Source: Lepidodermella squamata (Eukaryota > Animalia > Gastrotricha). From it: 64,000 nucleotides of DNA. Both the position numbers and the translations under genes were made by a program. The stretch spans positions 2,976,001-3,040,000 of the forward strand of contig JBLDXI010000007.1 of the NCBI GenBank assembly GCA_047495785.1, in the 5' to 3' direction. Of this stretch, positions 32,301 to 60,410 are shown piece after piece. The first letter of the stretch is position 1. Each line of letters opens with the position of its first letter. The notes under the pieces are model-generated. The model was not told the origin of the DNA. It worked only from the letters and a program-made list of their open reading frames with translations, and searched no databases.

Positions 32301-35300
32301 ATTTCGACTCTGATTTCTGCGGGTGGACTCAAGATACTAACGACGATGGCGACTGGACCTTGGAACATGATGCTACACCCACGGGACAACCTCAAATTTT
32401 CACAACAGGTCCACGTTTCGGAATTTCAAAGCAACGAAGCGATGGCAAGTTTGAAGCGAATTTCAGTAATTTGTAATTTGTTTAATATCTTCTATTCTGA
32501 AATTAGCACTTGATCAATATGCCCTGATGAACGCTGGCGCTGTGGGTGCTAATGGCAAAGTGGTTCGCATGATATCTCTACTGATTCAACCTGGTTGGAA
32601 GTGCGTCTCGTTCTGGTATTACATGGGCGGAAAGGATGTCAACTATCTGACTGCTACCCTGTTTATTTCTGGTCAACAATTCTGGACGAGGAGTGGCAAC
32701 CAATTCAAGCAATGGCGATTTGCAACGAAATCGATTTACCTTAGCTCACCTGATCAGGTATGAGTAGCCTGTAAGCGGCTCAATAACTGAATTATCTTTT
32801 TTGCAGATTTCCATCACTGCGGCAAGTGGTGCGTCGAAATACTCTGACGTAGCGATCGATGGTGTGCGAGTAACAGATGGCGTTTGTGATGCGCCGAGTT
32901 AGTTGACACCATATCTCACATCGAATATTATATTCAGCTAATGATTATAGCTCCGTGCCCCAAAGGCTGGATTCAATTTGGAAGGAAATGTTATTTCACT
33001 ATGCTTCCATACGTGGACACATCTTCTAATGCTTACAATATGTGGTGCCGAAGACGATTTCATGGTTATGTTGCTCGTCCCGAGAATCAAGCCGAGTTCG
33101 ATTTCTTGAAAAGCGTCATCGGTTCTACAACTATACATATCGATGGCTACAAATCTGGCTCGAGTTGGCTCGACGCCGACGGTTATCCTATTCAATACTT
33201 GCGTAAAATGTGAATGAAAAAAATTGAGCTTATTACATATCTTTCCTTCCGAAATTAGCCTGGGCTTCAGGACAACCAGGATCAAACACCCTCATTGCAA
33301 TGAGTTCTAGTGGTTTTCTCGGAATAACAAGCTCAGCTACCAATGCTATCGTTTGCGAAATTGACAAGCTGAAAGCGCAGTACATTACTTTCAACTGCAC
33401 GCTCGACGACAAGCACCTGTGCGGCTGGTGGAATCACGACGGGGACACGACCGAATCAATGACTGGAGCTACCCTGGATGCGTGGCGCGACTAATTCCGG
33501 CACGGACTGTGCCAAATTAGCAGCTAACAATACGCCAGTATGAACCCGATGCTCATAACTCGTAGTATGATGGATTTCAGAGCGGTTTCACCTCTAGGGA
33601 AACACCTGTAACAGGTATAAAGTCACATGAGGTGTCATTCGATAGGAAATCGCTTCAATAAGACGTAAAATATTTTTCAATCGATTTGGATTATCGGCTG
33701 ATTTTTCACAATTTAAAATCGATAAATCACTGATGATTCATCGATCTGATGATTCATCCAATCGCTACCAGCTACTGCAAAAACTACGTCATTGACCTCA
33801 CTAATATGGGTCAAGTGGTGCGCGCTACCACTAATAATAATGAAAGTACTATGCAACCCTCAGCTGCCTCTCCCCCTAGCGTGGGGGAGAGGCCTCTATT
33901 TCTTGGGGTTTAAATGTGAGCGAGGGACGATAATCATCTGTTGAAGTTGTTGGTTTCAAGAGACGGGAAGCGCGAAAGAGCTGTTGATCTTCAAGTAGGA
34001 GTTAGTCTCCAACCTTCGCGTCAGTGGCGTCGGTGGCTTAGTGGTAAAAGAGGCTGCGTGTGTAACGAATGAATGAGGGTTCAAATCCTGCAACCTACAC
34101 GCATTTTTATTTTTTATTTTTTTATTTTTATTTTTTTCTGGGCGATCATTGCCAAATGTCGGGTTGCGATAGCCCAGCAGATTTCGGAAGATATTATAAG
34201 CCGCCTGATTTTTAAATAAAATGCTTTAATCTATGCCAACAAACTCAATCAGTATACTTGGAATACCCACTTCAGATAAACTCTGGGTAACAGCTACTTC
34301 AATATTTAATAAGCCGAAACCTGAAAACATAATCTAGGGAGAGGGGGTTGAGATGCCCCTTCCTTTCAGGGAGGGGCGATGGGGTGGGCATGGAAAAGGC
34401 CTTGTTGCCAGACCAACTAAAAAGGGGCTGATCACAAACTTTTCGCGCTAGCAAAGTCAGCCCCCTTGATGGACGCGCGAAAAAACGAAGTTTTCCGGGG
34501 CCGGCTAGGCCCCTACAAAATCTCACTCTGTGCGCCCCGTTAAACGCGACGCCGAGTTATACGGTTGGCCACTTGACCTAAGTTTGGGCTAGGGGATAAA
34601 CTATGATACATACGAACATGCGGAAAATTCCAAAAAATGCGCCTTTTCGCTAAATATTACTAAAAGATTGTTTAGACCTATCGACCATACGGCTGATTTT
34701 TTATGAATTTAAATTACTTTTTTGATTTTTTATGCAAATTACATATTCATGAGCACACTGGGTCATGACCCGGTTAACGGCAACGGCGAGCGCGCACCTT
34801 TATTACCCTCAATAAAATTTTATAACGCGCAAACGAGAATTCGCGATTTTTACCGTAAAACCAGGTTGCCTCCCTTCCCCAGAGGGGGAGGGAGGCATCA
34901 AAAATAATGAGCAAAAAATGCTCTATCTAATGGTGTAAATTTAACGAATATATCACAATCGGCTGATTTTCTATTGATTTTAAAAGGTGCGCACACGAAA
35001 AAATTGTCCACTCTCAAACAGCATTTAGAATTTTCAAGCGCCAGTAACCTCTCTGAGGCTGCGAAATTTGTCGTGGTAAACCCAGATTTTTAGACACTAG
35101 AGAGAACGGCGATTTCTTTGATACTAAGAACGCTCTGAAATTCGCGAGATTTATGATGAAGAAGTGATTTGCGCACTGCACATTTTTAATTTTTTCCAGC
35201 GCTATACATGGCTGATTTTTCACCCGGAATTCATAGGTTTAATAAAATTGTGCGCAGGTTTCGTTTACATAGGCGTATAGAGCAGCTTTCGCTGATTTCT

Positions 35301-38300
35301 TCAAGACCAAACACGTCCTTGTAGTCCTTATCCGGAGCGGGTAAGAATTGCGCGGGAAAACTTGTCCTTTATTTTAATTTTTCAGTGTGCTGTGAGCAGC
35401 TTTTGTTGATGTTTTTCAATAATGCAAGACGTGTTTATTATTTTATAAGGCCTGAACTTAGCTTGATGGAGTAAAAGATTTAAGGTGCGTCTCAAATTTT
35501 CGTAAATTTGAGATTTTAGTGCCAAGATTCTTGCCATCTGACGTAAACTTGTAAAACTATTACAATCTTGGCCGCTCATGCAAAGATGCAAAACAGCTGT
35601 TTCGAAACGAAAAATACGTAATGACCTCTACGAAGTTTTCTGAAAACGTCAATTTAGTAAAAGGACGAAGCATAAGGACCTTGATGACATGTAGTGGTCA
35701 TAGCTTTTCGATGGAACCTATTTCTGTGATATTATTAAAGCAAGCACTTTTCAACATTCTTATTTATATGTTTGTTAGATACAGAGCATTTGAGCTAATA
35801 ATCTCACCCCTGGCGACTCCGAAATGATTTTTTTCACCAGGCTACGTTACTAACGACATTTTTTCGTTCTCAACGTAGAAAAAATTAGAGAACACATGCC
35901 CTCAATCGCGACGTTCTATAATATCACCCAATTTTCTAATATTTTGTGAAACTTCTACATGAACTAGGTTGTCGGTTGCATTTTCAGTCGGTTTTAAGTC
36001 TGTATTCGGGCAAAACGAGATTTAGCTGACGCTATTTTCATGGTTTTTTGGAAGAGTGACCAAAAAGGAACTAACGTCATTTACTTCACGTCATTTTTTT
36101 ACTTTGCTCAAATTTTCAGATAATTTTTTGTCACTTTAATTTGCGAGATTTATTTGTTCCATAATTGGCTTCAAATTTTAACCTCATGTATTTGCTATTT
36201 AGCATTTTTGGTTGGTTAGTTTACGGAATTCTAACAGTCTTTTTTCCATCTTCTCAAGTTTAGATTTTACCGCCATATGAAGCCGATATATGACTTCAAG
36301 CTAATTAAATCATATTTATAGTTAGATTTTTTAATGTTTAGAACTTCATTTTCAATCGCACTAGATTTTTTTGGAAATTTCGCTTGAAATGACAAGAGTT
36401 GGGTTCGGCAAAATTCAAAAAGACAGCACTCACAACTGCTCGATTTGTTCCATACCTAATTTTAATGCCAGAACTCATTGCGCGAGGTGCTCCAAGCACC
36501 ACCCGAAGAGAGACTGTGAGGATGTTACGCTTTCAACAGGTTTTTAGCTCTATTTTTGCCGGTTAATCTTATTACGTTGCACATTAAAGGTCAAACTGGA
36601 CCCGCAGTTCATGTTTCTCTTCCGCTAGTTCAAGGTGAACTTTTCAAGGTGAAAAAAATTGGCGCCATGAATGAATATGTTTTTTCGATATATTATTAGC
36701 CGAAGAACCTGTGCCTGCTGAAAACTTGACAGGTGAAAATTGCCCGAAGTCTTCTACGTTTTATTCTACTAACGTTTCTCGTAGTCTCTTCGGTTGACAA
36801 TACTAGGCGGTCTTATGCCGAAGTTTTAACTGGAACTGGAACAGGCGGTATTGGCATCGCAGGACCTGAACTTGCAAGACGTTTGGGCGGCAGTGGTTTC
36901 CGGTACACTGATTCCGATTATAACCGAACTGATAATATTTTACGTTAGTTTTATAAAGTATTACTAATAATTCGCGGATAGAGGCACTTTGACTTTTGGT
37001 CCTTGATACTCGCGCTTTACGAATAGGAGGACCCACAATAGCTGGTCTTGAAACCGCCAGCCGTAGTACACAGTAGGTAGTAGCCGAATTTTTAACTCTT
37101 TTACCAAATAGTTTAGTTTAGTTTAGTTTTATTTTGCTACGTAAACAGGATGAATATATATATATATGTATCTATCGCATAGATACTAGTTAATTATATA
37201 TAAAAATTAAATATTTGTCGATCAGGAGCCAGGGACACGTCCACTCACATTTCATTTTTGCTTTAGGTTCAGCTTTTTTTTAGCTTTAGCTTTAGAGCCT
37301 ATTTAACCTTGAATTCATCTAAACTTTTGCCGTGCCGTTATGGCGGCGACTGCTCGTAATTGATTGCAGCTGGATTATTTGGATGTTTCTTGTTGGTTAT
37401 TTTTCTGGGCAAAATGCAAGCTGGGCATTTCTGGGCAATTCTGGGCAATTTACGTACTGTAATGACTAATGACTAATGATATCAATTTTCGGCCAAATTG
37501 CCATGGGCCGTGGGCCGTGGGCCGTGGGCCATTTTTTACGGGTTAAGGTCTGCAATTTTTGGGCAGTTTATTGCTCTTTTATAGCTGATTGTTTTTTGTT
37601 CACTTCTCACCAGCGTTTGGCTCAACCGAGATTGTGTTGCCCTTTGATTTTGTTGGTTCTGACAGCGAGTGGCTAATCGAGGTTGCGAGATTAAATAAAT
37701 TTCGAGTCATCGATAACATCGGGCGGGGTGACTGCCAATTTTATGCTGTTAGCGATGCTGCTAAATTCCAAGGGATGAATCACAGTTACCTGGAACTGCG
37801 AAGAATGACGCAGCGTGGTTTAATGACTGGACAATACGACTATCTTGTAGTGCATGATCCTCAAGCCGAAGAAGATGCCCTTAATAACGGCCAACATTTG
37901 CCCAGCAGAAATGTCGAAGAATTGGCACGACGCATAGGATTGCCTGCAGCTCAGGGCGGGGACTGGGGTGACAATGTGTCACTATTGATTATGGCTAATT
38001 GTCTCGATGTTACCATCGCCGTGTTTGACAACCGTAGCCGTCGCGTGTGGCGATGCGGCGATGGGCGGAGGGCGCTTTACATTGCTTATGACCATCAATC
38101 TCCACATTACCAGGCACTGGTGCCTTTGATCGAAGGCGATATATCAGGAAACGGACACGTATCAATGATTTTTCATCCATATCATCAATCGGACGATGTT
38201 ACCAGTCGTGAAGGAAATCAGATGGAGCAAATTGATGGTGAGTGAAACTAATTAAATTGATGGCGAGTTATACTAAGACTTACTCAAAACAGTTAATCTC

Positions 38301-41300
38301 AACTGTTCATTTTAAATTAAAGGCCAGACTTTTAATTTGGACTTGATTTCAAAGTGTATATAATTCCATTTTCACTTTGCAGCCGTGTACGAAACAATTA
38401 GACACTATTTCAATTTCCGAATTTGATAGCTGCGAGCTTAATTATTTTCGCGGGGTTTTATGGCTGTATGTTTTGCAGGGTTATATTTTGGTTATACGAA
38501 GGGTCTGCGAATATTTTTCAAAACTGCTATTCGGCTTGCAAAGGGTTCATATGACCATTACTGCAAAATTATGGCAGTGCAAAAGCAACCATGAATGTCT
38601 GACATATTATTTTAATCTGTCAGTGCCTGGAAAAACAAACCTGTTTGACTCGAAATTTCACCAATCAAACAATCATATTCCATAATCTTATATTGCACAT
38701 TTCCATTTTTCTATTCTATGCTATCAGATGACAACTTCGGGGCATTTGGCGACTCGCTCTACGACCAGGACTTGAACCTTTTCCGTACTTCTACACTGCC
38801 ATCGGTGAGATCGGGTCATGTGGAAAGCAGGTAAATATTTTATCATTTTCGTGTTTTCTCATTTCATTTTTTGAGAAGTTCGCTTACAACCCACCACCCG
38901 CAGCCGGTTGAATTGTTAGCAGGTAATTTTCGATATATTTTTCGCATTATAAGTTAAAAAATTGTATTTTTCACCTTCTTCTTTCAGTTGATCATTCTGC
39001 CACCACTGGGTTCGAAGCTGTGGAAGAACATGGTATAGTAGCTTGATGTTACGGAAAAGAGGCGCACTATTTATTCCACCTTCATTTTTTAGCTGGTGAT
39101 TCGGAAATCGTTGGCCTCGAAGTTGTTGAAGAGCAGGGTATAAAAAATGCTTTTAGCTCCAATTTTATCGGTTTTTATTACGTTTCGACAGACATTATCG
39201 ACGGCAGCAATGAAGTACTCAGTTCGGAAGCGAATCTCGATCCACCACCTCCTTACTCTAGAATTCCAACCTCTGATGGTGAGTTGCACATTAAGCTAAA
39301 CTGGTAGCAACTGACACCTCTTTCTTTCCTTCAACTACAGCGGAGGCGCCGGGTGGTCAATGCTGTTCTTGTAGACGGCATGCCACGGAGCATATGCCGT
39401 TGCCCTTAGCTTTCGTTGAGCGTGATTTTCGAGGCAAGGCTTACGGTCGTTTAGCGAAATCAAGGATTCACAGACGGCAATGGTTATGTCGAGATTGCGA
39501 GCTTTATCTTCTCCATTCAAGCAACTCTTTCAGTTTCAACGTTTGCTGGCCTGCACTGCTTTATTCCGTATTATTTAAACCTACATTTCGACACATCGGC
39601 CTGCTGCTGGAGCATGTTCTTCCGCTCAATGTGAAAGAGATGTGGTCTGCTGAATTGCGATCGACAGGTCAATTTAGTTTCCTTCAAGCCGAATCGTATT
39701 TTGCTGACAAAACGGATGTTGTTACCTTGTTCGAAAAAGGAGCGCATAATCAAACTTCTGGTTTGTCGTCATAATATTACTTTAGTCATCGCGATACGCT
39801 GAATTTTGACCTTTGTTAGGAAGTTTTCGAAAATATTTCAATGCAACTTGTTTTCCTGATGTCCGTTGCCCGATGGGTTGCTGGGCGCATTCAGAAATGT
39901 GCCAGAAAATTCCTCTGCACAACTTCATGCATCAATTCGGGGGCCAGAAGTTTGGCAATTCAAAGGACAGATGGTTCACCTCTGCTCGGCCCGAGTTCCC
40001 AGAACCTCCTTGTGTAACTAAATTGAATTTCATCGTCAAACACGGCATGGTCATTGATGATTCTCTTGGAATCTGCATTTTGGCTTGCAGCAGTCATTCT
40101 AAATCGACATTGTTTAACGAATTTGTGCACCCAGCTCGAAATGTATTTGATGACGTCGGTTGCTCGCAACTTCCCGAAATAACTGCCGCTGTTATGCAAC
40201 AGCCTAATTTTGTACGCTCTGGCCGAATTGGGGTGAACGCCGTGTCGATGCCAACGGTCGAAGTTGTTGGTGGCCATTTTGGCTTGAGCAGCTTTTCGTT
40301 ATTTCCTTGTTTACGGGAAAAATTGGGCGACGTCGGAGAAGACTTGTACCCGCAACTTTTAGCCGCTGAACAGCGCCAGGAAGTGAAGAACACTTTGTTT
40401 GCAAAGGAAGGGTTCAAAGACGCGCATGACCTATTACAACGTTTCAGCCCTGTGCTTACCGCTAAAATTGACGCCGTTGAAGCGGCGGCGAAAGGCGCTA
40501 CATTTGTTGATTATGTCGACGCTTACACGTCATGGGCAGCAATTCGTCGAGAACAGCTGGGGTTTCCTTCTCAACCGCAAGGTGCAAATGTTCCAGCAAA
40601 TACGAGAATGTTATTGAGAAATATAATGACGAACCCTATTCATCCAAATAATGATCACGGGATGAAGCCATATCTCATCAAAATTCCTTCACAAGATGGC
40701 CCGTGCAGCCTTCTCGGCCAAGTGCTAAATGGTATTTTAAATTGCCGCCCGATCTATCGAAATGTACTATCATATCATGTGAATGCTGAAAACGCTTCTA
40801 TCGGTACTGTGTCATTTGCTAAATTACTTTGCATAGCCGCTAATTTCGCCAGCAAGCGAACTCAGATGGTGACAGGAGGCACGGTGAGCAGCGCATTATG
40901 GACACATACTACCGCTCCGAACAATCAGCCCATTATTCCAATGCAGTACAGGATTAGCAATCTTCTCAGTCTATTAACCATGAGAGTTACCAGCGAAGAG
41001 CTAGGCACTTCTGGCGGTCAGCTCGTGCGTGTTCGCATCCGACCAGACAATCTGCCGCTTGATCCAGGAACTCGTGTAACCCGAAGCGTTTCTCGTCAAT
41101 GTTAGTTATATTTATCAGCCATACCTTTGCTTTATTATCTCCTTTTTCTTTCAACAATCTCTTTATTGGAAAACCGCTTTCGCAATGATACACATCTTTT
41201 GTGTGATTAATATCCTAATTATTGTCATATTTACTTTATTTAGTGCTCGCGCAAGGTACTCTTATTACTGTTGCCGGCCAGCCGTTCATCAGCTTCGTTC

Positions 41301-44300
41301 CGACACATGACATCGTTATCATTCAGACAGAGGTGGGCAGCCAAGTCACAACGTCTAAACTGCCGCTCAATTTGGCCGGTCATTCGTTACATTTCATGGT
41401 TTTGAGAAGGCCAAATACTCGAAATCAGAACAACTATTTCACTCTTATGCGATGGGGTCCGCAGTTCAACGGCTGGTGGCTCATGGACGGAAAGAAAACT
41501 ACTAAATGCGAGAATATTGCTGATGTCATAGGTGAATTTACTGAATTGCGTTGTATTTTTTTGGCAAAATACCCATTTAACTTGCTAATAAATTTTACAT
41601 TTTTTGTCAATGAAATCGTTAAGGTTGTAGTAGTGGTTTTTCATGTAGAGTCGGAAATATTCAAATAAACGATAACAATTTTGAATTTTGAATGAAATCA
41701 CTAGACGTCGCAAAACTGTTCTTGTTCATTTAAATTCACTGTTTTTCGGTGATATTCTGGTTGATAACGCACGGGTTTAGCGGATACGTGGCCAACACTC
41801 AAAAGTGCCGCCGCAAACTGGCGATAAGTTCAATTTCAGAAACATATTCCAACGGGATTTTTGGGACATAGTGACGCATCTCCAGGCTAAATGGAAGCTC
41901 AAGTGGCTTTTGGTTCCAATCTGCTCATATAACACAGTATTTCTTTTATTATATACTTCATTGCCGTTTTATTTATTGTTATTCTCTGGTATTTTCAGGA
42001 GACGTTATTTACGCGGTTTACGCCCGTCCAGGTGATGATAATTTGCGCAAGGAAGCCGTTTTGTGTTCTATCGGCGGTCAGCGTCGAGCAGTGTGTGCGG
42101 AACATGTTGATAAATTGGATGGTCATGGTTTCATCAAAGTTTCGAAAGACCTCAGTGTCTCTTGCTGCGCGCTAAAAGGAAGAGGCCGTAGAAGAAAGCG
42201 ATGTGACAATATCGCTCTATTTCGTTGTCCGTTCGGTATCACCACTGGAAAATTGTGCGATGTTGGCATCTGCAATAATTGCTACAAAAAGCTACCTCGC
42301 GATGTTTCACAGCGGTTCGCAAGACATCCTGAAATGCCCTGCCTTGCGCCCAGCCTTGGTCATAACCATGACGATGACAGTTCGCCAGAACATTCAGACG
42401 ATGAAGGCAATGTTCTACAAGGCCGTATTGACGATGCAGAGGTTGTTTTCGGAGCTGATGCGGATGAAAATAATGAGGACATGTTTTACCCATTGGGCGA
42501 TGAAGATCCAATTCTGAATCAACAAGTTCACCAGGCCCATTCTGAACGAGTAAAATACAACGTCGCAAATCCTCATGCCAAGATTCCCAGCAAATTCCTT
42601 CTAGTGAACGCCTTTAGAATCTTAGAGCGGAACGTCGCACCATATCCTTCAAGTCGAACAACGTTGCTCTTAAATCAATTGGTACGAGCAGGAGACGCTC
42701 CTGTGGTGTCACTTATGTACCCGGAGGCGAACTTGTTCCCTTCTGTTTATCATTCCAGTGCGAAAGGCAGCGTTCTTGGAGCATTGCCGTATTATCAATA
42801 TTCTTCGCCTGAATCGGGTAAATATAAAGGCGTTGCGCCTTTGGACGAATACTTACAAGTACGCACAATGGACGGTCAGCTTGCAACCAGTCGGCGACTA
42901 GATTATCTTCACTTCGCCTTCGATATCAGCCAGGGTCAGAAATTGAATCATTGTAGTTCAGAAATGGTCTTTCGGCGCGGATTTGAGACTGCAGCCGAGA
43001 AAGGCGGCCTTGGATCTGATGCGACGCAAACTACCCTAAGCTATGACCAGTTCGACTCATCCCGCAAACAGAAAGAAATCGCAGCTCAAATGGCCGAGGC
43101 GCCGTGGGATTATTTCTACACAGTAACAGCTAATGACTTAGGTAATTTTACATGCTATTTTTCGTTGTTTTCTGGTATCATACCTACATATCATTATTTT
43201 CTTTTACCTTATAAATGGCTTCAGGTTCACCTGGAGTTTGCGAAATTGTTAAGGCCATTCGTGTTGCGTCGAGGAAAGGATTGCCTGCGAATGTCAAATT
43301 ACCGCCAGAAGCATTCAACATATCGCTTAAACAAGCCAAGGACATTGAAATTGACGAGGACCGGTTTCGTAAATTATATGATTCGTACTTCTTCATCATT
43401 AACAGCACTTGGCAGCGGACAGTCAAAAATTTGCAAATTTTCATCGAGAAAAGCCCATCCCGACTTTTGGGTAACGTTCACACTCATTTCTCGCGCATCG
43501 AGTTCCAGTCGCAGGGTTCGCTTGGCAACAAATGCCATGTACATGGAGGTATCTCTGTTCGAAATGAAAGCGATAAGCAGATTAATGAGCGAATTTGTCT
43601 TGATCCTGAGAAGTTCTATTCCAGGCAGTTCAATTCGTCATACCGAATGCTACTTAAGGATGGCCTTGTATCAGATCGTGAGGACTTTGATTTTCTGGTC
43701 CAGCAGTTGAAGCCTCTACAGCGGCATAATTGCGGAAACGCTGGCGAACGATGTCAGAAGCCACGAGGTGAAACTGGCGAGCTTATGTGCAGAGTTCGTT
43801 CCCACCCGCGTTCCTATGATTACTATTATGATGAGAAAAACAACTTGTATGAGCCTGAAGTATATGCTGAACTTGAGCGTCTAGGTTTGGCTATTTCTTC
43901 GATGTCTGGGGATCAAAAGTCGTATAAATTGCTAGAAGAAACTTTGAAGGCAGGGACCTGGCATTATCCTTTAAGTCAAGTTGATGAGAACTGCAAATTT
44001 ATTCCAACTGTTCCTGTTCTCGCCATTATGATGCGTGGCTCTACCAACGTTCAGAGGTGCGACAAGCGCTTCATGGTGTCCTATCTCGTAAAATACGTCG
44101 CCGGAAAGGTCATTTTGAATACAATTCTTTTCCCTGCCTAATATCGATTTTTGTTCTAGGAAGTTCATTCGAAACCATCCTACAGGTACACGAAGAATCC
44201 TGGGGAGATAACTCTTCAACCCGTTGAAGGCCCGCCTTTGAACGAGAAACTTACCAGCGTTCTCATTTATCAAGCATCGCAAAATCGCGCTCTCCGTCGT

Positions 44301-47300
44301 CAAAAGCACTGCAACGTCATGGAGATACCTGCCACTGAGATGCATTGGTTTCTCCGATCATTTCCGTACACCCACTCGAACGCGCTTTTTGTCCACGTCA
44401 ATACGCAGCCTCCGGAGTATCGCGTCGCATATAAAGTCAAACGACGGCGGCGAGGTGCATTACCTTCTGGTAAATTGAATTGCTAAATTGTATTACATAC
44501 CGCAGTTTTTGTCTTTTACTTTTCAGGCGTTGATGGAGTTGCCTTTGAACCCAATGCACTCAGGCGCGATTTCAATCAGCCGTGGCGTCTCTTCTCCCAG
44601 GAACAAATTCAACTTGCACGCGAGTATCGAGACTCCGGGTTGTGCTGTGGGGCGATGGAGCGGTTCAACATTCGAGCCCCCGAGTTGTTGATATTTTGCA
44701 ATCCCGCTGATTTCCACAAAATATTTGTCCCGTTTTATGGAAAATCGAAGCTGGTATTGACGGAAGATGTCGAATTCTCGCCATTTATTGATGCTTTGGG
44801 TCGCATTTACAAAATTCGATCGTGTTCTCTCGAGTATGGGATGGATTATTTGAATCGACAGCCTCAATCAAACCCGGCGGTGCCGTTTCTCAAATCAATC
44901 TTCAGCAGACTTTTGGCTGGCGATGAAGAATTGGAGCATATTTTCTTGGATAAGACTGACGCAGTTTGCGCTATTCCTGTCGTTTCAAGCTTGACGCCAT
45001 CAAATCGATTGAAATTTTTTTATCATATCGCTATGACTCTCGGTGAAGTCGACAATGAACTTCTCACTTTCAGCGTCGAGGATATGCGAGCCGCATTTGC
45101 CAGGTGTCACCTGGTTACTGCAATCCAGCGGAATGGTGAAGTCGAATATCCTAATTTGCGCGAGGAGATAGATTCTATCTTGATACGTTATTTGCTAAAG
45201 CAGCTGGTTTTCTTGCCCGTTTCTTCGAAGCGTCTCGGTGCACTGTTTCTTGGTGCTAAAGCTGCATTGGAGGACCTATTTTTCAATGACGGTTCAACTG
45301 ATTTCGGCTTACCAGCGATTTCTGATGTTGCTCTCAAAGCTCAAGTTGATCGAACAATCGCATACGTTGAGCGCGCACAACGAGAGCTCCTTGTGAAAAC
45401 CTGCCATGCACAGCTACTTGGATTGATTGATTTACCTCCCGTTGAGGAGTTCCTGAATGCTAGCATCGAGCAACCTGCCGACTGGCATCCGGAAATTCGT
45501 CATGCGCCAGGTAGGCTCTCTTTTCACCCCTTTTTTTAATTGAATTTCTTGTTTTATCCATTTTAGGACAAACTGATGATTCGCTCAACGAACAGCGACG
45601 GGCCCTGCATCATGGACTGGCTAAGATCAATGCATTGTTGACAAACCGTCGTAGCTACAAACATTCTGTATTGGTCGGTCCGCCTGGCTGTGGAAAAACC
45701 TTTCTGATCCAAGTCCTTACTTTGTATGCTCTTGGCCGCGGACACACGGTTTGTCTCACAGCTCTCACCTCCGAGCGCGCCAGATCTCTTGGTGGACGCC
45801 ATTTGCATTTGGTTTTTCCAATGCGAGTTCACCCTAGCCAGTATTCTCACGCATTGTTGGATGCTCAGGATTGCATTCGTCGGTTGGCTAGGGATCCTAT
45901 GAAAGCTATGCTACTTTTCAGGACTGACATATTCATATTCGAAGAAATTGGCTTGATATCGGCTGAGATCTATGCCCAGGTTGACGCTGTCATGCAGTAC
46001 ATAACATGTTGTGGACTGAAAATGGGCGGCAAATTGGTCTTGGCGACCGGTGACTATTGCCAATTGATGCCAGGTAATAAATTTATGTCTTCAACACCTA
46101 TGCGTTCTTTAGCAAGCTTTTCTTTTCATTAATTCATTAATTTCCATATACCATAACCCATAACATAGCCTATTTTCAACATTGATATTTCGGTGAATAA
46201 GGTGTATTAATTTGTTCCTTAATGAGAGAAAAAGTATGCATATGCAAATTAGCGTTATAGATGCAACGGGTCCCATTTCAGTAGTAAGCAGCAATAGCAA
46301 TAATAGAGTCTACATTTTCCCTAAGTTCTGATTTGTCGTCATTGTTAGTCAAAGTAGCCAGACAGGTCACATGTTCCACATAAACTTATGAACTTTTTCT
46401 TTCAATCTCGTTGTAGTTTCCGGTCGACCATTTTGGTTATCGACACACCTCCTGTTTGCGTTCGATGTTTTCCTACTTACCGAATTCGTTCGGGCTGCGC
46501 AAGACGCAGAAATGCAAGAAATTTTAACGTTGCTGCGGTCGCCTGTTTTAGATCAGCAACAAAGAGAGCGCATTCGAGGCATCATTGTCAACCGCTGTCC
46601 GTTCTACAATTCTTGGGATGATGTTCCTGATCATTTACTGAGGATTGTCACCACAAGGCGAGCGCAACAAACTGTTGTTGAGTCGTTTTTGCAGGCGAAA
46701 CGTAATGATGCATCAACTGTGACCCGGCAATGCTCATCGATTGATGAATGCCAATATCGTGATGGCTGGGAACCGACTTCGAACAGGCAATATATCAAAA
46801 AGCTGAACTCTACTTGCTTGGAGCCTGAAGTTTTGACGCTTTTTGAAGGCCAGGTTCTTTGTTTAACTTTCAACAACATTGTCAACGACGCGAGGCAGTC
46901 ATTTTCCCAAGGACAATTGGCAATCGTTCGGCACATCCCAGCTGATTTGATGCCATTGACGGCTAGAGTCGGAGTCAAAATTGTACCGCCAGGTCATCGC
47001 TCCCTCGCAGTTATACCTGAAGATTGGCCTCTACTTTATATTGGCAGACACACTGGACCTGAAGTTTCTGTGGGTAGAAAACATGTCAGAAGAAAGCAAT
47101 ATCCATTTCGATATTACATTGCTGGTAATTGCTTTTTTAGTTGCTTGGCAGTTATTTCAGTTGCTTGGCTCTTGGCTGAACTCTCATATATAAGTATTGT
47201 TCTTTTATAGCTACCACCCATAGAGTCATGGGTTGTACAGCTGAAGATGGCGTTGCTATCCAAGTTTCATCAACAGAGAGAGCATTTCGAATGTGGGAGA

Positions 47301-50300
47301 AGGCCCAATTCCTTGTCATGATGTCGCGCTCCAGGTCGCTTGACAAAGTGGCTTTCGTTGGAAGCGATCGTCATGGCATACTCGAAGCAATCGACGCCAT
47401 TCTTATGGAAACGTCTGCTTTTGATGAAGCCACGAGATCAAGACTGCGCCAAATGGACATCCTACCCCAGGCTGATATGGTCACTGTCAACATCGACCCT
47501 GTTTTCCTTTTTACCAACTCTGTTCTGCCCCAAATTGATTTCGGGGTCGTCTATCATATTGTCTCTGAAAGCAGACCTTTTGCATCGTATATCGGACAAA
47601 CGGAAAGATCCATTCATCAACGCCTTGGGGAGCACAACACAGGTAATATTTGCAATTTGCTGATTTACCGTCAATTATCAATTTCTCATTTAGGAAGCGG
47701 ATCAAATTTCACTCGCGGTGATCAATGGGTTTTGTGTACTATCATTCATGGTTTTCCAGATGACGCCAGTCGATTGCGCATGGAGCGCGACATTCACCTT
47801 GCAATGCGAGGTGACATATTTCCGTGGCAAATGCGCGCCGTTCTACGTCAGCAAGTCGCCATTTTTAACAACGACAATCCCTTCGCTATCCGTCTGTCAG
47901 TCGTTGCTTTTTGTGACCTCAATGAACAACACGTCAGATATCTTGCTCGGCATTTGCCTCCTGGGACCGTCATTGTTGGTCGTCGCGTTTGTTGCTTTTT
48001 AGTTCACATGGATTTGAATGTGTCAGCTTTCTTTTTAGGAGTGATTCCATGTGAACAGATTTTTCGGCATGTCGTCTTTTCCTCGCGACATCTATGTCAT
48101 CTTGCTTGTTCTACCGTTTCAATCGTTCCCTTGTCCAAATTTTGGAAGATGGTTTTTTTCTAATTTACTTCAAATAAATAATACTCATGCAAATCTTCTG
48201 ATTTGTTATTTTATCAGACATCAATGTCATATCGCTGATATTTTTTTCTTTTTTAATTCCTTATTGTCGTCATTGTGCTAATTTGACAAGCACACATCGT
48301 CATGCATGACCTGATTAGCAGCGACGTCGCTCACGCACCTTTTACCCTCAAATGTTAAGCATGACAAATAATAAAACTTGTTTACATTTTGCTGCAATAG
48401 AGGGAGGGGGTTGATTCTCCCCTACTTGCAGGAGGGGAGAGTTCAGGGGTGGTCATCAACAAGTCATAGACATTGATTACATCATACTCTTGTCAGTTAC
48501 ATACCAAACACAACTCTGCTGGTATTTTTATTTCTGGATTTTGACACTTGGTCAGGCCTCGGAGGGCAATGGGAAAATGATGTTAATCAGAACGGCCCCA
48601 ACTGGGACTGGAATCAAGGCAGTAAGATTTTTTCAAATTGAAAAATTTGGTACCAACTCATTTGAGCTAGATTCTCGGGGTTACTATGCGATGACTGCAG
48701 ATAAAATAGCACCGACGTGCACTAGCCTGTACACTGAAATAAGCTCGCCCTTCATCAAACCAGGAGGGCCGAAATGTTTCCGCTTCCGTAGCTATCGATC
48801 CGCAGTATCGAATAAAATTGAGGTTGTGCCAGGTCTAATATCGAGCGGTGCAATAACCGCTGTACCAGGATGGACTATAACGGGAAACGTAGACGGAACT
48901 GCATTGACATGGAGAACAATCCAGGTCGAATTAAATTACCAAGTTGAGTACCGAATCCTCATCCGTATTTGGAGTGCTTGCGACGGTAAAGGGCTGGGTA
49001 ATCAAGCAGTGGACGATTTCATGCTATTTGACGGAACTTGTACTATTACGCCAAACTCGCAATACGCAACCTATACAACAAACAGCATTCGACCGCTGCC
49101 ATCTTGGCAGGATGCGACCGATTCGATAAACGACGCCAATTTTTTCTACTGTACTGACCTGAACTTACCGCAGTGGCGACCGATAAGATTCAGCGATGAC
49201 GTTTGGACGTGCGACTCATTCGACCTACCAGCCACGCATCAGCGAACCGGCCCTCAGTCAGACTACACAGGCGAGGGCAACTACTTGAACGCCGATAATG
49301 ACCTGGGCACTTCTTTGACGGGAGTCACCCGGCTGAGCGGTCCAGCAGTTCCCGCGGGACTCCGCTGTGTCATTTTCCACTATTTCCAGTTCGGCTACGA
49401 CGCTGGTGAATTCCGTCTCAGCGATCAAACCGGGCGATTCTTATTTGCTGTGCAGGGTGATCAATTGCCAACGTGGCGGGAACATCGCATCTTGCTGAAT
49501 CAGCCAACGCCAACTGTACTGACCTTTACGAGTAGCTCGGCTCTCTTCGACGGTTTCACTCACTATCAAAGATTCGGCGCCATTCAAATCGACGACATCT
49601 ACGTCAGAAATGGAACTGATCTTTGCATGGGATACATGGATTGTGACTTCGATTCTCCCACGAGTATTGCGGACTGCGGGTGGCGTCAGAATGAAACTGA
49701 CGACGGCGACTGGGTACGTAACAAAGGTGAAACTCCAGCTGGAAACGGATTAACAGGGCCAAATGCTGACCAGCGGACCGGAGCGGGCCATTACTTGTAC
49801 TTTGACGCAACCGAAGTAAAGCCTGGGGCACGAGCTAGAATTCACATGCCACCAATCGCTGCTGGGAACTCCTGCCTCACCTTTAATTACCATATGTGGG
49901 GCAGCGATGTCGGATCCTTACGAGTTTTCTACGTTCCCCAAAACGCATCATCAACCTATGTTGGAAACTTCCCTCCCTATGGCGAAATTCAAGTTTTTGG
50001 ACGATCAGGGTCACAGGCGAACTATTGGCTGCGGGCGATGGTTCCTTTGCAGTTGAATCACCCTCAAATAATGACTTTCGAAGCCATCCGAGGCAACGGC
50101 GACCGAGGTGATATTGCGATCGATGATGTTGTTCTTCTGCGTGGTTCATGTCCTCAAGATCGGTCATTTTCTTGCAGCTTCGAGCGAGGCGATACTTGTG
50201 CCTGGATCAACGATCCAGCAGCAAACCGCAAATTCACCGTCCGCCGCGGTAAGACTCCGGGCTCCCCTATAAGCGGCCCGGAAGGTGATAACACTGGCGC

Positions 50301-51804
50301 TTATGCAGGTGGTTTCTACGCCTATGCTCCTGGAACAGGCGGACCAGCTGGCTCTTTCGCCAGCCTGGTAAGCCCCACAATACCAGGCGCATCGACTGTT
50401 TGCTTTCAGGTTTACTACAACCTTCGTGGGAGATCAGTCGGAACTTTGACCATATCAAGAAACTCAACCGTTGTCTACAGGATCCGTGCTGGCACTACTG
50501 GTTATGATTGGCGGCGCATTTCTACAACGATCAGCTCCAACTCAGCTTTCAACATCCGAATTGCGTATTCGGCTTCATCGCAATACGCTGAGCTCGGTTT
50601 GGACGACATTAGTGTTACAGACGGCCCTTGCGGCTCGAGTAAATCCATTATTTCGCTTTGTCCATAATTTTTCATAACTTCATTTAGATTCGAGCCCGAC
50701 AACCAATTCATCATCTATTAATTCATATCAAATGCAAAGCGGCTTTGCGGTATACCAACACTGTGTGGCCAACTACACCGGCTTAACTTACGTTGCGTGC
50801 CTGCAACTCTGCCGATCTAATGGAACATGCAGATCCTTCAATTTCGACACCAGCACTGGTCTCTGCCAGCTCAATGACCGCGTTCCGGAATCTAATCCCT
50901 GGAACTTCAACACCGCACCGGCAAGTGTTTCCATCACCAGGGTTGCCTCGGCATTTTCGCAGCTGGAAACTGTAAGCTGTTTCACGGCAGAAATTTGTTT
51001 GAGGGAAAACATACTTTGTCTTAACAGAGATTGCGTCACATTTGCTCCCTTGATTCAACGCGGTGCACTTTGACCAGGAATTGTATGGTCATGCCACATA
51101 CGGATATGTATGTCTGCAGATGTTTAGAACCCGAACAGAGCTGTTACATGCCTCGGGACTGCACTAGCCTGTTCACCAATGGCTATCGTGCTAGTGGAAC
51201 CTATCTTATCCAGCCAGCACTAACTTCAATTGCAACCATGACTTACTGCGAAATGGATAATGTAAATAACAAGGGCTGGACTGTTTTGGCCAATCGAAAT
51301 AATGGGATCACAAGGTTCAGCAATCGCCGCCTTGATGAGTACCAACAGTTCTTCGGTAATCCGAACGGGGAGTATTGGCTGGGTTTGGACACCATGTCCC
51401 AACTGACAAGCCAATTCAACTATACCTATGCATTTGATGGGAGCATTGGTGTTGGATCGTTTCCTTCGATCTCTGGTGGTCCAAGTCAGTCGCTGAAAAT
51501 CTCACCAGCCAACGACAACTACCGCATCGGTCTGACAGCGACTGGCACAATGGCCGCTACCATGAATAATCAAATATTCTTGGCTAAAGACTCCCCGCCA
51601 TCCGCAAATTCAGCCTGCCTGGCATCGTATGCCTACTCAGGCTGGTGGTACGCTGCCTCGCCTACCTGCATCAATGGGTTGCTCACCGGGCCCTACCGTC
51701 CGGGTGAAGCCCTGTCGACGGGGAAGTTCGGCATGTACGCCAATGATTTCAACAACACAGCAGTGGGCTTGTCGGCCATGCGATGGCGAATCACCCGTCA
51801 GTAA
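29318..51804 (+). CDS. Large secreted multidomain lectin-like protein: SP-CUB-CUB-LamG/pentraxin-like x3-MAM-CTL-MAM x4-PAN-EGF-like-fibrinogen C; one apparent frameshift near 33465
   Basis: CUB (GYIQSDRYPNYY..C; GVLTSPFFPDPYPTNVQC), LamG (GWWPLDG..DDISGN), MAM (CDFD..CGW..D.GDW; IAIDDV), CTL (CPKGWIQFGRKCY; WASGQP), PAN (CLQLC..CRSFNF..CQLND), FBG (PRDC..SGTYLI..FGNPNGEYWLGLD..GWWY). Exons approximately 29318-29620, 29674-30193, 30246-32444/32465, 32507-32757, 32807-32897, 32951-33202, 33259-33537, 33581-33614, 48671-50638, 50688-50971, 51028-51804. Confidence 0.8.
33866..33893. other. Perfect 11-bp GC-rich hairpin near the left end of the Helitron-like element
   Basis: GCCTCTCCCCC-tagcgt-GGGGGAGAGGC. 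Confidence 0.8.
34027..34108 (+). ncRNA. tRNA-derived RNA polymerase III unit (A box, B box, oligo-T terminator); not a canonical tRNA
   Basis: A box TGGCTTAGTGG at 34034-34044, B box GGTTCAAATCC at 34078-34088, GCGT/ACGC terminal pairing, then TTTTT and (TTTTTA)n; no good anticodon stem. Confidence 0.65.
36389..48163 (+). CDS. Spliced RepHel-type polyprotein: RanBP2/NZF Zn finger - OTU protease - Cys-rich regions - HUH Rep - PIF1-like helicase - GIY-YIG nuclease
   Basis: CSICSIPNFNARTHCARC; OTU RGDCQFYAV, WGD, HYQAL; Rep YFYTVTAND, RIEFQ..GNKCHVH, YLVKY; helicase GPPGCGKT, FEEIGL, GDYCQLMP, RKQYPF..ATTHRVMG, AQFLVMMSR; GIY-YIG GVVY..YIGQT..RLGEHN..ME. The GT-AG junctions I checked from 37614 to 48163 keep the frame open; the small 5' exons are less certain. 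Confidence 0.85.
48416..48440. other. GC-rich hairpin near the right end of the Helitron-like element (candidate 3' termination hairpin)
   Basis: TCTCCCCTACT-tgc-AGGAGGGGAGA (10/11 pairs), about 250 nt after the RepHel stop. Confidence 0.7.
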
Positions 51805-55827: not shown

Positions 55828-57272
55828 ATGGCTAATTCATCTAGAAACATCCATCAATTTTGCTCCAGAAATAGCTCTGGACTTTGCCCGCTAGAATCGC
55901 CGGATTTTCATGGAGAAATCGTCAACCTTCTAGTCCAACTGGTCGATTCATGTGCGAAACGTATCCCCTTGAGGAGAAACGCCGTGAAAGTAACAAAAAC
56001 GGCTGGCAGAGACAGCATGATGCTGATTCCTACTCATTTATCCGAAGGTTTTGTCGTCGATTTCAAGCCGTTCAATTCGAACAAACGGGCTGAATTTGTC
56101 CGTATCCTGCTGAAGCATAGCATTGAAGTTCTGAAAGAGCAAGAAAAAACCGAGGAAATCGAAGAATTCCGCCCGATTCACGCGTTCATCTTATATCTGG
56201 CGGTTTCACTCGGGAGGACGAGGGAATTTTCGGAATATTTCGAGAAATTTCTCGACTTCATCCCGCGTTGTTTCGTTCGACTATTGCTGTTTTCTGCCGT
56301 GGAGCCGCGTTATTCGAACAAAATCATATGCCGACCAGTTGACGAATCGATCAAAGCTGCGATAGCGCTGATTTTGTTAGACAACGGAGTATCCTTGAAT
56401 CAAAATTTTGATTGTTAGTTAGAATTTTTCATTTTTTACAATTTTTGCAATTTTTCATAAAAATTTCATTGTTTATTTTTTTATTTTATTTTTGGAATTT
56501 TTGAAATTTCTCCAAATTTTTACCAGATGCGATTTTGAAGCTGTGCGAAGGTTTAAAATATCCTGCAAAATCTGCTACGGATCATCTGGAAAAAAATCGA
56601 TTATTGAAATTACTCGTTTCGAAATCGTCGTTGGCTGACCTTGATCGCATTGCTAGTCAAAATTTCGTTAACATCGGCCATTACTTGGAAACAGTTTGCT
56701 TCAACGCTTATTATATGGATATTATTTGCAAGGCGACAGGATCGAATTTTGCGGAATTTTTCGACTATTTTCAAAATTTCCAGCCCGCTGCGTTGATGCC
56801 ACATTTATCTGAAAAATTGATCGACTGGTCGCTGAAAATTCAAATTTTACCCAAGCTGCGATCTGGCGCTACAGCACTTTATTGCTCGAATTATCCGTAT
56901 TTTTCAAGCTCATGTTCGGGCAAATTTCTCGAATTATTGAACACTATCAACAACTATCCCGATATTCAGAAGCGATTCGCTGTTTTCACGCTTCAGTTTT
57001 TCAATTTCGAGAGCTTGATGTTGGAAATTCGGCCATCTTCAAATGGGAGAATTTGCGAGATGATGCTAGGATTGTACCCGTTTTCGCTTCAAAGCGCCGC
57101 TCGGCTTGCTGTTCTGAAACGACTGCCCTGTGGCCTGGAAGATCGTGCGAAAGCGATCAAAGGTTTGCAGCTTCCAAAAATTTTGCAGCAGCTGTTGAAC
57201 TATGAGGATTTGGATTTTTACCTCGATCCTGTTCTGCAGGAGAAATTCGCCAAAAAAATGCCCAGTATTTGA
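55828..57272 (+). CDS. SOCS-box family copy 12 (exons 55828-56413, 56527-57272)
   Basis: T|GTTAGT donor, ACCAG acceptor; YPFSLQSAARLAVLKRLPCGLEDRAKAIKGLQLPKILQQLLNY. Confidence 0.88.
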
Positions 57273-58045
57273 TCGACAGTGTTATTATCTTTTTTCTAAT
57301 TTTTCGTCGACATTTTGAACCAAAATTGTGATATCTTGTTCGCGCTAAAATATCTCAATAAAAAATGAAAAATGAAAATAAAATAAAATTCCTGCCGATT
57401 TTAAAATGACCGTCGTCAAATGAAAAATGGGAGTTGCCGATGATCTGCATCTCAAAAAGTGGGCTGACTTAAAGAAGGACGATTATGAATTCCATGATGC
57501 TTCTAGTCAGTTTTTTTTTACAAATTTCGATTTTTTTAATTCCATACATTTTGGATGCTGCCTTCCTCCATCCTACTTATAATGCGGGGAACTCCGCACA
57601 GCGTAGCCGGAAGTTCAGGTTAATATGCAAGCTGGAGTATAAATCGTAGACTAACCGCTGATATAGCAGAAAATATCGTAAATTTTGAAATATTTCGAAA
57701 ATCTCGGAAGTTCTTTGAAAAGGTCCAAACTTGAACAATGTTATATAAATCTTTAAAGTTCACGATGAATATGCTCTGATGAATATCTGAATATTCTCGC
57801 TCTATATTTTCTGATTCAAGTTTATTATTAAAACTATTTATTGATAGTAATTTTAGAGGCTTTCAATATCGGCTTTCTTTTCTTGTCCACTATCTTTACT
57901 ACGGTCGACCCATAAAATTGCAGACTTCATATGATCAGCTCGCGGTAATCAAAATTGCCTAGAAACCATGCGGAAATCGGGCGCTTGCCTTTGCTGCGCG
58001 CACACCTACGACGCCCGCTTGAAATGAGCAGTCATCGCTGCGACA

Positions 58046-58119
58046 ATTTATTATGGTATATTGTTCTTTTATATTTTTGTGACTGATGGACAAATAAATT
58101 TGAATTTACAATTTACAAG
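58046..58119 (+). mobile_element. Very short 5'-truncated retroelement-like insertion with candidate 7-bp TSD
   Basis: Matches 35-105; TGCGACA flanks both sides (58039-58045, 58120-58126). Confidence 0.6.
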
Positions 58120-58824
58120 TGCGACACGGCGCGAGGCTGTGACCGTGCGGCACTTTCGCGTGCGACTGTCGTGCGTGACAGTGCGCTCGTGACGCAAAAT
58201 GTCGCGGCCGTCGCAGTGCGACTAAATACACTCCCATTAATTAGGAAAAAAATAATTATCCCGCAGAAACTCATACAGTAGTTAACCTCCTTAACCTCTA
58301 ATTGCGCATTATTAAGACTGTTTTAGTGGGATTGAGAAAAGTGTAACATTGCACGTGAACTCTCAAGACGCACCTGTTGCCGATAGCAGAAGTCCTATTA
58401 CTTTTTCCAGCGAGTAAACCTGAGTCATCAGACGTTTATTTCTGATGTAAATAGAATCGACCCTTTTTATTGACTCATGAAATGATTGCTCATGACAATG
58501 AATTTTGCGATCAGTTGGCTACTTGCCCGTTATCTCGGCTTGACTTTCGTGACAATTTATTGGACTATTTCCTCCACCCATAATTTTCTAACCATCGAAA
58601 CCGTGGAAATAATTCTTTGTGCGTAAAAATGAATGATGTTTGAGTTCGACATTATACACACATCAGTCATCTTTAATTCACATGCCAATTATTGAATGAA
58701 ATACTACAGTATTTTCCCAGTACATATAAAGGCGAGCCTATTAGCCCATCTATCTATAATATGAATTTCGACCGAATCGACAAATTTTTTTGCTCTAAAT
58801 TTGCATCTAGTGAGGCTATATTAA

Positions 58825-60410
58825 ATGGCTAACAGCATTCACCAATTTTGCGAGAAGGGTGATTCTGGAATGTGCCAGCTCGAATCGCCTCATTTCCACC
58901 AAGAAGTTGTCGACCTTCTAAAACAGTTAGTCAATACCTGTGCCAGACGCATTCCGCTGAAGAAAAACGCCGTGAAAGTTACAAAAACGGCCGGAGAAGA
59001 CAGCATGATGTTGATCCCTACTAACATCTCGAACGGTTTCCTCGTCGATTTCAAGCCGTTCAACTCGAACAAACGGACTGAATTTGTTCGAATCATGCTC
59101 AAGCATAGCATTGAAGTTCTGAAAGAGCAAGAAAAGACGGATGAAATCGAAGAATTCCGCCCGATTCACGCGTTCATCCTATACCTAGCCGTTACATTCG
59201 GCAACACTAGTGTATTTTCGGAGAATTTCGAGAAATTTCGCGATTTCATCCCGCATTGTTTTACTCGACTTTTGCTGTTCTCTGCCGTTGAGCCGCGTTA
59301 CTTGGACAAGAAAATGTGCAATTCAGTTAACGACACGATCAAAGTTTCTATTGCATTGATGCTCATCGACCATGGACTAAACTTGGAGGCGACATTCGAT
59401 TGTAAGTCTTGGCCGATTTTTTTCATCATACTTTACTTCAACCAAATTTAAAAATTTAATTCATTTTTTTATTTTTAACCGTTCATTTTAAAATTTTAAA
59501 ATTTCAATTGTATTCCATTTTTAATAATTTTATTTCTAATTAATATCAGCAATTTAATATAATTTTTTAATAATCATGAAAACTTCAAAAATGCACTGAA
59601 ATTTCTAAAAACAATTGTCTCTTGTTCGCAGAATTTAATATATTTTTTTATATTTTCATTTTTCCATAAAAAATAGATGCGATTTTCAAACTGTGCGCAG
59701 GTTTGAAATATCCCTCGAAATGTGCTGGCGACGACCTTGAAAAAATTCGGCTATTGAAATTGCTTCTCGCTAAATCTCCGTTGGTGGATCTTGAAAGACT
59801 TTATAGACTGAACCATTTTGCTGTTGGACTTTATTTGGAGACAGTTTGCTTCAATGCCGAATATCTGAATATTGCTTGCAAGGCGATTGGGTCGAAAAAA
59901 CTCCCGGAATTTTTCGACTACTTCGAATTATTCCATGGCGCTGTTATGGTGCCACATTTAGCTGACAAAATTATTGATGGGTCCATGAAAATGAACCTTT
60001 TGCCCAAGTTGCGATCAGGAGCGATAGCTCTATATTGCTCGAATTACCCGTACTTTTCAAGCTCGTGCTCGGGGAAATTCGTTGAAATTTTGAACACTAT
60101 CAACAGCTATCCCGATATTCAGAAGCGATTCGCCATTTTCACGCTTCAATTTTTCAATTTCGAGAGCCTCATGTTGGAAATTCGACCATCTTCAAATGGG
60201 AAATTTCGCGATATGATGTTAGGATTGTACCCGTTTTCGCTTCAAAGCGCTGCTCGTCGCGCTATTCTGAAGAAATTACCTCATGGATTAGAAGAGCGAG
60301 CGAAAGCGATCGAAGATTTGCAACTTCCGAAAACGGTGTGCAAGATATTGAATTACGATGACCTGGACTTCGAATGTGATCCTGCCCTCTTTGCCAACTC
60401 GCGCCGATGA
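58825..60410 (+). CDS. SOCS-box family copy 13 (exons 58825-59401, 59677-60410); close paralog of copy 12
   Basis: T|GTAAGT donor, ATAG acceptor; YPFSLQSAARRAILKKLPHGLEERAKAIEDLQLPKTVCKILNY. Confidence 0.88.

Follow-up and report, generated by a model that had tools for sequence, protein, structure and literature searches.

The window examined here, 64,000 nucleotides (nt) of the gastrotrich Lepidodermella squamata (contig JBLDXI010000007.1, positions 2,976,001 to 3,040,000 of the forward strand; all coordinates below are those of the window unless another contig is named), raises the question of what a structure-specific nuclease is doing at the end of a rolling-circle transposase. The window carries a Helitron-like rolling-circle element at approximately 33.9–48.47 kb, whose giant, intron-bearing transposase gene extends from approximately 37.6 to 48.16 kb, and the plus-strand segment 47540–47950 encodes the C-terminal nuclease domain of this transposase. 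The domain order is an OTU protease, a conserved N-terminal region, an HUH/Y2 Rep, a Pif1-type helicase, and an SLX1-type GIY-YIG nuclease, and both this architecture and the identity of the nuclease can be assigned with high confidence. A first-pass annotation, made from the sequence alone, had proposed that an SLX1-like nuclease, interrupted by an in-frame intron of 51 nt, is fused to the helicase at 47540–47800, and that it could nick the target or resolve flaps and branches in place of the apurinic/apyrimidinic (AP) endonuclease of Helentrons.

Identity of the C-terminal nuclease

Frame 2 of the plus strand is open from 47180 to 48160 and yields an open reading frame (ORF) of 327 amino acids. 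Helicase motifs V and VI are read in this frame as ATTHRVMG (approximately 47210–47233) and LVMMSRSRS (47312–47338), and the Ser-Arg pair of motif VI (47324–47329; S775 and R776) is invariant in the helicase alignment of the relatives described below. The segment 47211–47539, which comprises these motifs and a conserved linker (PF.P...P), leads in the open frame into the nuclease and has tblastn matches to the helicase–nuclease ORFs of two relatives, L001 and L004. The frame then reads FGVVYHIV from 47540, followed by SYIGQT and by QRLGEHNTG ending at 47642, and, after 47694, SGSNFTRGDQW...GFP...RLRMERDIH; the peptide quoted in the first-pass annotation is thus present in frame 2. The claimed continuity with helicase motif VI also holds: a single exon, read in one frame and with no intervening stop, carries the last helicase motifs together with the first half of the nuclease, and relatives encode both parts in single uninterrupted ORFs. 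The proposed extent is right at its start and too short at its end, the conserved module continuing to approximately 47950.

The first half of the nuclease (47540–47642; β1-β2-α1) contains Tyr 47552–47554 in GVVY, Tyr 47588–47590 in SYIGQT, Arg 47621–47623, and His-Asn 47633–47638, with YIG lying 12 residues on from VVY. The second half (47694–47950), which is kept in relatives to approximately 47950, contains FTRG, a tryptophan, GFP, and the metal-binding Glu 47783–47785, followed by an SLX1-like helical extension (PWQ...N...L..E..VR..AR). In a profile alignment, the window keeps the equivalents of Cg-Slx1 Tyr14, Tyr26, Arg36, His40-Asn41, and Glu79 (PMC4407285), and the catalytic positions are kept in most of the 14 full modules available from relatives.

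The queries of all searches were the unspliced open frame or individual exons. The Pfam GIY-YIG profile PF01541 scores 28.9 bits (E 1.5e-6) on 47540–47860, above its gathering cut-off of 22.6, and 25.2 bits on the whole ORF, with an alignment that needs approximately 17 extra residues in the window; the scores of relatives range from 26 to 37 bits. When the window domain was searched against the PDB as a single sequence, the only matches, to photosystem and TT1380 entries, were spurious, and a family profile was required. The only PDB nucleases matched by the profile of the nuclease module were SLX1 (from three fungi), HIGLE from Arabidopsis, and UPF0213 from bacteria (two proteins), the best match being 4xlg (E 6e-5). 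The larger helicase-plus-nuclease profile matched SLX1 at E 9.8e-11 to 1e-7 (4xlg, 9.8e-11; 7cq2, 8e-10; 6seh, 1e-7), HIGLE at 1.7e-7 (7wme), and UPF0213 at 2e-6 (1ywl). No other nuclease, UvrC and homing endonucleases included, appeared among the PDB profile matches, and a search of NCBIfam returned nothing.

The AlphaFold2 model of the unspliced translation (predicted local distance difference test (pLDDT) 83.8; predicted template modelling score 0.80) has a predicted β-β-α-β-α-α fold. The top 11 Foldseek matches to this model are all SLX1 or HIGLE with a probability of 1.00, and two orders of magnitude separate them from the next matches. VIA-align superposes the model on SLX1 and HIGLE structures with Z scores of 8.7–10.4 (root-mean-square deviation 2.6–4.0 Å over 104–115 residues), against 3.7 for UvrC-N; model residues 16–148 lie on Slx1 residues 8–152, that is, on the full nuclease domain and its helical extension. 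The model also matches an SLX1 homolog cluster in the ESM Atlas with a template modelling score of 0.60; a feature search of the ESM Atlas gave scores of 0.82–0.83, below the meaningful level. Profile searches, Foldseek, and VIA-align concur on the SLX1 type, and profile and structural checks of the kind suggested in the first-pass annotation thus both point the same way.

A RING finger, which defines orthodox SLX1 (PMC1564403), was not found: the tail of the window protein has neither a Cys/His pattern nor a Pfam match, relatives end 10–20 residues past the module, and the structural match ends at approximately Slx1 residue 152. Members of the SLX1 lineage lack a conserved Asn on the C-terminal side of the catalytic Glu (PMC1564403). 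The 20 residues after Glu 47783–47785 of the window include no Asn, nor is one conserved there in the alignment of relatives. As the domain has neither a RING finger nor the cysteine pair of Penelope-type enzymes, it is grouped with the RING-less nucleases of the SLX1 lineage, such as HIGLE and the C-terminal domain of plant MSH1. HIGLE is an enzyme of this kind that acts alone (PMC9071465), and RING-less Slx1-like domains, including a fusion to MutS (MSH1), are on record (PMC1564403). Judged by profile and predicted structure, 47540–47950 encodes a genuine GIY-YIG domain that belongs to the SLX1 lineage and lacks a RING finger.

The segment 47643–47693 splits the nuclease between α1 and β3 as a phase-1 intron of 51 nt. 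It starts with GT, ends with AG, is in frame and free of stops, and is pyrimidine-rich before the AG. In alignments with 10–17 relatives, it corresponds to a 17-residue insertion found in the window alone, the relatives reading EHNSG-GGSxFTRG without a gap at this site, and the insertion (residues 54–70) is the sole stretch of the AlphaFold2 model with a pLDDT below 50. The alignment and the model both point to a real intron, as the first-pass annotation had read it. An intron shared at the same position by the ostracod Cyprideis torosa was considered and rejected, since the genomic frame is uninterrupted there and the apparent intron is a gene-model artefact.

The transposase gene and its relatives

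The remaining parts of the gene lie upstream on the same, plus strand. An OTU-like cysteine protease ORF (37589–38242) scores 22.3 bits with the Pfam OTU profile, just below the cut-off of 23.3, and is followed by the conserved N-terminal part of the giant gene (39837–43141), which has no named domain and is collinear in tblastn matches with L001 ORF 471–2960 and with L004 ORF1. The Rep region and its spacer to the helicase (43225–45510) contain introns at 44109–44159 and 44470–44526, and the HUH motif (HVH, 43536–43544) and the two-tyrosine motif (YLVKY, 44082–44096) are both present upstream of the helicase. Over 499 alignment columns, this region shares 41% identity with the L001 ORF, and the stops in the frame coincide with alignment gaps; in Pfam it has only a weak REP_ORF2-G2P match, and Helitron_like_N misses it. 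The Pif1-type helicase is encoded by two exons (45567–46073 and 46417–47124) separated by a 343-nt intron (46074–46416), and includes the Walker A motif GPPGCGKT at 45677–45700. It matches Pfam PIF1 with E 6e-11, and the family profile matches Pif1 proteins in the PDB at E 1e-26 to 1e-17 and Helraiser at 1.7e-19.

Between 41998 and 47950, the gene is interrupted only by seven GT-AG introns; besides the one in the nuclease, their lengths are 51 (44109–44159), 56, 57, 83, 86, and 343 nt. Every in-frame stop coincides with a GT/AG-bounded gap in the alignment to relatives, and this copy looks intact. The gene ends in a non-conserved C-terminal tail (47951–48178), with a TAA stop at 48161–48163 and the signal AATAAA ten bases later, at 48173–48178. 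In this tail, at 48136–48153, a second individual has gained 7 nt and, 17 nt away, lost 1 nt, a net gain of six nucleotides, and the stop at 48161 therefore stays in frame.

Ten relatives of the nuclease were obtained when 1.84 billion cluster representatives were searched exhaustively with HMMER (query 47486–47959), and further ones by searches seeded with these matches; a word-based protein search with the 327-residue ORF gave nothing. At least 25 protein clusters, from the Cyprideis torosa genome and from metagenomes, carry a Pif1 helicase and a GIY-YIG nuclease, and in all of them, differing as they do by 60–75% from each other, the nuclease is in frame after the helicase. Single ORFs that encode both parts occur in P0002, P0005, P0021, P0029–P0034, and the Cyprideis torosa contig L006, and the order (OTU)-Rep-helicase-nuclease is seen in four independent contigs. 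In P0031, with which the window is collinear, one ORF of 1519 amino acids contains the HUH motif, Pif1, and GIY-YIG, and the JGI metagenome contig L001 is collinear with window positions 40023–47950 at 27–53% identity. L004 has three abutting ORFs, which encode an OTU domain (25.9 bits; cut-off 23.3) in the same relative position as the OTU ORF of the window, Helitron_like_N (34.0 bits; cut-off 28.9), and PIF1 with GIY-YIG, respectively; in L005, Helitron_like_N (35.3 bits) is followed by the nuclease ORF. No Pfam match to Exo_endo_phos, the AP endonuclease profile, was obtained in the gene pieces of the window or in approximately 35 relatives.

In L006 (Cyprideis torosa contig CAJPEW010004914.1), positions 1470–3167 form an uninterrupted helicase–nuclease frame with 73% identity to P0002. 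Public annotation hides the domain here, because the protein model at NCBI (P0012) exits this frame right after EHNTG, in the middle of the nuclease, and continues into unrelated repeats.

Another conserved ORF, of 325–470 amino acids, follows the Rep–helicase–nuclease gene in three contigs (L004:10363–11337, L005:14286–15293, and L007:7060–8469). The three versions are 22–26% identical (E 1e-10 to 1e-18) and share a CxGxxCD...CxC motif; they have no Pfam or PDB match and no homolog in the window, and the AlphaFold2 pLDDT is 32.

Possible roles of the nuclease

In Helentrons, the AP endonuclease sits after the helicase, and, to our knowledge, the role of the extra endonuclease in elements of this type has never been established. 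By analogy of position, the nuclease of the window most likely holds the slot of this AP-type endonuclease and would do the same job. Helentrons also carry an OTU domain upstream of the Rep-helicase, in addition to the AP endonuclease (PMC6431247, PMC11417382). The substrates of SLX1 enzymes are branched DNA (5′ flaps, splayed arms, forks, junctions) rather than plain duplex (PMC4407285), and a cut at a fork, flap, or hairpin is therefore proposed. In this scheme, Rep would nick the transposon strand, the helicase would peel the nicked strand off in the 5′-to-3′ direction, and the nuclease, tethered to the helicase, would cut the fork, flap, or terminal hairpin that the helicase creates. At the donor or target, this cut would leave a nick in the opposite strand, yielding a 3′-OH for second-strand synthesis, and would allow resolution. 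As there is no RING domain, SLX4 should be dispensable, and the helicase would itself hold and position the nuclease. That the nuclease makes a second-strand nick at a branch or hairpin for priming or resolution is the role we favour, tentatively and at less than even probability. The role suggested in the first-pass annotation, target nicking or the resolution of flaps and branches in place of the Helentron AP endonuclease, appears reasonable and fits the domain position and conservation.

Several points weigh against this account. Helraiser, a canonical Helitron, transposes with its Rep-helicase alone, and a second nuclease is therefore not a general requirement; both the substrate of the nuclease and its role in transposition are only what we infer. 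The window has a Gly at 47627–47629 where Cg-Slx1 has Arg38, and an Arg is found at this position in 10 of 14 relatives. Since the R38A substitution severely impairs Slx1 catalysis (PMC4407285), the nuclease of this copy may be less active. Approximately 70 residues past 47950 are not conserved, which leaves the C-terminal end of the protein beyond that point uncertain. RNA support for the locus was not found, a search of sequencing runs having given no run recorded as RNA. In run X2, which is possibly RNA and may be DNA, fold-back contigs of 80–132 nt at a depth of 2–7 cover the intron in unspliced form; these contigs contain no splice joint, and they are too short and of too low a depth to be informative on splicing. 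At the 3′ end of the element, the complementary repeat expected upstream of the hairpin is not clear in the one copy available, and the placement of the element in the Helentron/Helitron2 group is putative.

The ends of the element bear on what the nuclease might cut. A candidate 3′ terminal block (48398–48466, plus strand) contains a hairpin at 48416–48440, and a similar 11-bp hairpin lies at 33866–33893. Hairpins of the form CTCCCC..GGGGAG occur only at these two places in the 64 kb (at 33870 and 48417), with none expected; they are G/C-rich, have folding z-scores of −3.2 and −3.8, and bracket an element of 14.6 kb. Helitron2 elements have hairpins at both ends together with short asymmetric terminal inverted repeats (PMC3627910), and the two end hairpins fit the habit of paired hairpins; the termini, read from a single copy, are approximate. 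The right-hand hairpin lies in a 65-nt block that is seen again, in direct orientation, at 34335–34403, approximately 14 kb upstream, where the hairpin is kept through different bases, and the 20-nt core motif of the block is found twice in the 64 kb, with 0.12 expected. The upstream block may be the end of a short relative placed end to end with the large element.

These features leave some room for a real nuclease with another role, such as the trimming of terminal hairpins at termination, the resolution of end-to-end multimers, or the cleavage of competing or host DNA structures. Many kinds of branched DNA are substrates of SLX1 enzymes (PMC4407285), hairpins are present at both ends, and a second 3′-like block lies 14 kb upstream in direct orientation. 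This alternative, which is possible and on balance unlikely, differs from the favoured second-strand nick only in which branched substrate is cut, and nothing at present separates the two.

The gene could also be a single-copy cellular gene that derives from such a transposase and is kept for a host function, for example as a helicase–nuclease in repair. In an assembly of run X1, from the second individual, one contig spans 42401–48246 at approximately 99.5% identity, and the two sequences differ by nine synonymous, eight nonsynonymous, and 11 intronic changes. The ratio of nonsynonymous to synonymous polymorphism is approximately 0.26 (binomial p 0.007), and the density of differences is four-fold higher in the predicted introns than in the exons (Fisher p 4e-4). 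This copy is under purifying selection. Such selection between two individuals at what is apparently the same locus, an unbroken 6.3-kb unitig of uniform depth, seven spliceosomal introns, and the presence of no second copy within the 64-kb window would all suit a domesticated gene. However, introns and purifying selection are also normal in the transposase genes of active animal Helitrons, and the full layout of an element is kept, with the OTU domain, a Rep with both HUH and YxxxY motifs, and hairpin blocks at both ends. Domestication is accordingly improbable.

Less probable still is the recent capture of a fragment of a host SLX1 gene, which would then ride as a passenger with no role in transposition. 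Helitron-like elements often take up fragments of host genes, and the GIY-YIG domain of a moss Helentron family has been termed “captured” (PMC11417382). The window domain, however, is only 21–24% identical to SLX1 proteins, has no RING finger, and retains its catalytic residues, and in the 25 or more divergent clusters the nuclease occupies the same in-frame position. Trees of the helicase (last 330 residues) and of the nuclease module were built from 14 proteins that have both parts, with fragments, two disrupted Cyprideis models, and the window (spliced) left out; they contain the same four well-supported groups and no supported conflict. This agreement indicates that the nuclease has long been inherited together with the rest of the transposase. 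A recent capture is largely refuted. An AP-endonuclease outgroup was sought for a domain-swap test, and beyond the family a profile word search gave only prokaryotic Pif1 and RecD. The nuclease was acquired long ago and has diverged together with the helicase across a deep transposase lineage.

The least probable reading, a Penelope-type or homing-type GIY-YIG enzyme, draws on the frequent occurrence of Penelope-like retroelements with GIY-YIG endonucleases in the genomes of invertebrates (PMC8557442), and is refuted by motif and structure: Penelope endonucleases are defined by a CCHH zinc-finger motif, two cysteines of which lie between GIY and YIG (PMC8557442), whereas the window reads HIVSESRPFAS there, with no Cys (at most one in relatives), has neither a CCHH nor a CX2-5CxxC motif and no profile match of such a type, and reaches a Z score of only 3.7 with UvrC-N.

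Place among known systems and neighbouring DNA

The element resembles Helentron/Helitron2 (HLE2) elements in its giant transposase, upstream OTU domain, HUH Rep, Pif1-type helicase, endonuclease after the helicase, candidate hairpins near both ends, and introns. It differs from Helentrons in having an SLX1-type GIY-YIG nuclease in place of the AP (Exo_endo_phos) type from which the Helentron name derives, and from Helentron/Helitron2 in that Pfam Helitron_like_N misses the Rep of the window and passes only in relatives. A full-text literature search for Helitron-like elements together with GIY-YIG or SLX1 gave one sentence only, on a moss Helentron family (PMC11417382). That family, HelenSM92, an HLE2 family of Sphagnum magellanicum, likewise combines GIY-YIG with a Rep-helicase in a Helitron-like element; it is, however, a plant family, and the sentence describes the domain as captured and gives neither its position nor its subtype, nor how it relates to the lineage from animals and metagenomes described here (PMC11417382). 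Dozens of relatives have the build of the window element, which has hardly appeared in print.

Outside the Helitron-like elements, SLX1 and At-HIGLE are the best profile and structural matches over the whole nuclease domain, have the same active-site residues, and lack the C-terminal Asn of the UvrC/I-TevI branch. Unlike SLX1, the window nuclease has no RING finger, and with it no orthodox docking to SLX4 and no auto-inhibitory dimer, and it is a transposase domain rather than a stand-alone repair protein. Plant MSH1 also carries a RING-less Slx1-like nuclease at the C-terminus of a DNA-tracking ATPase (PMC1564403), but its motor is of the MutS type, and it is an organellar host gene that is not mobile. 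Penelope-like retroelements, which combine a reverse transcriptase with a GIY-YIG endonuclease, are likewise mobile elements with GIY-YIG where sister lineages use AP-type endonucleases or other nucleases; they differ in belonging to the CCHH zinc-finger branch of GIY-YIG, in moving by reverse transcription rather than by a rolling circle, and in having unrelated proteins. The alternation of AP-type endonuclease and GIY-YIG known in non-LTR (long terminal repeat) and Penelope retroelements has a parallel here.

It is conceivable, if doubtful, that the element and its relatives represent a third, deeply separated branch among the Helitron-like transposons, whose defining feature would be the SLX1-type nuclease in the slot of the Helentron AP endonuclease. 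If so, two unrelated nucleases would have been recruited independently to the same place on a Rep-helicase, and this side of the superfamily, unlike canonical Helitrons, would need a dedicated second-strand or branch-point cut, which would point to a step of eukaryotic rolling-circle transposition that is lacking in current models. The occurrence of a second, unrelated nuclease at the same slot, with its catalytic residues kept over deep divergence, argues that the activity is needed and that the domain is not a passenger. The specificity of SLX1-type enzymes for branched DNA narrows the hypotheses to cuts at forks, flaps, or hairpins, which can be tested on standard substrates. A GIY-YIG domain is not part of the models used by current Helitron annotation tools, and the Pfam model of the Helitron Rep nearly misses these Reps; the lineage is therefore probably under-annotated in animal genomes, as in Cyprideis torosa, where the NCBI model halves the nuclease.

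Directly downstream of the element lies a long ORF (48490–50667) in which Pfam recognizes four MAM domains (E 7e-71). This ORF, which presumably represents an exon of a receptor-like host gene, speaks for an animal host. Elsewhere in the window, two local tandem duplications unrelated to the element are found at 21573–24084 (approximately 1.77 kb apart, 79–98% identity) and at 55876–60286 (approximately 3.1 kb apart, approximately 82% identity), and a motif of 61–64 nt recurs at 12571, 17316, 19871, 24581, 28068, 57073, and 60215.

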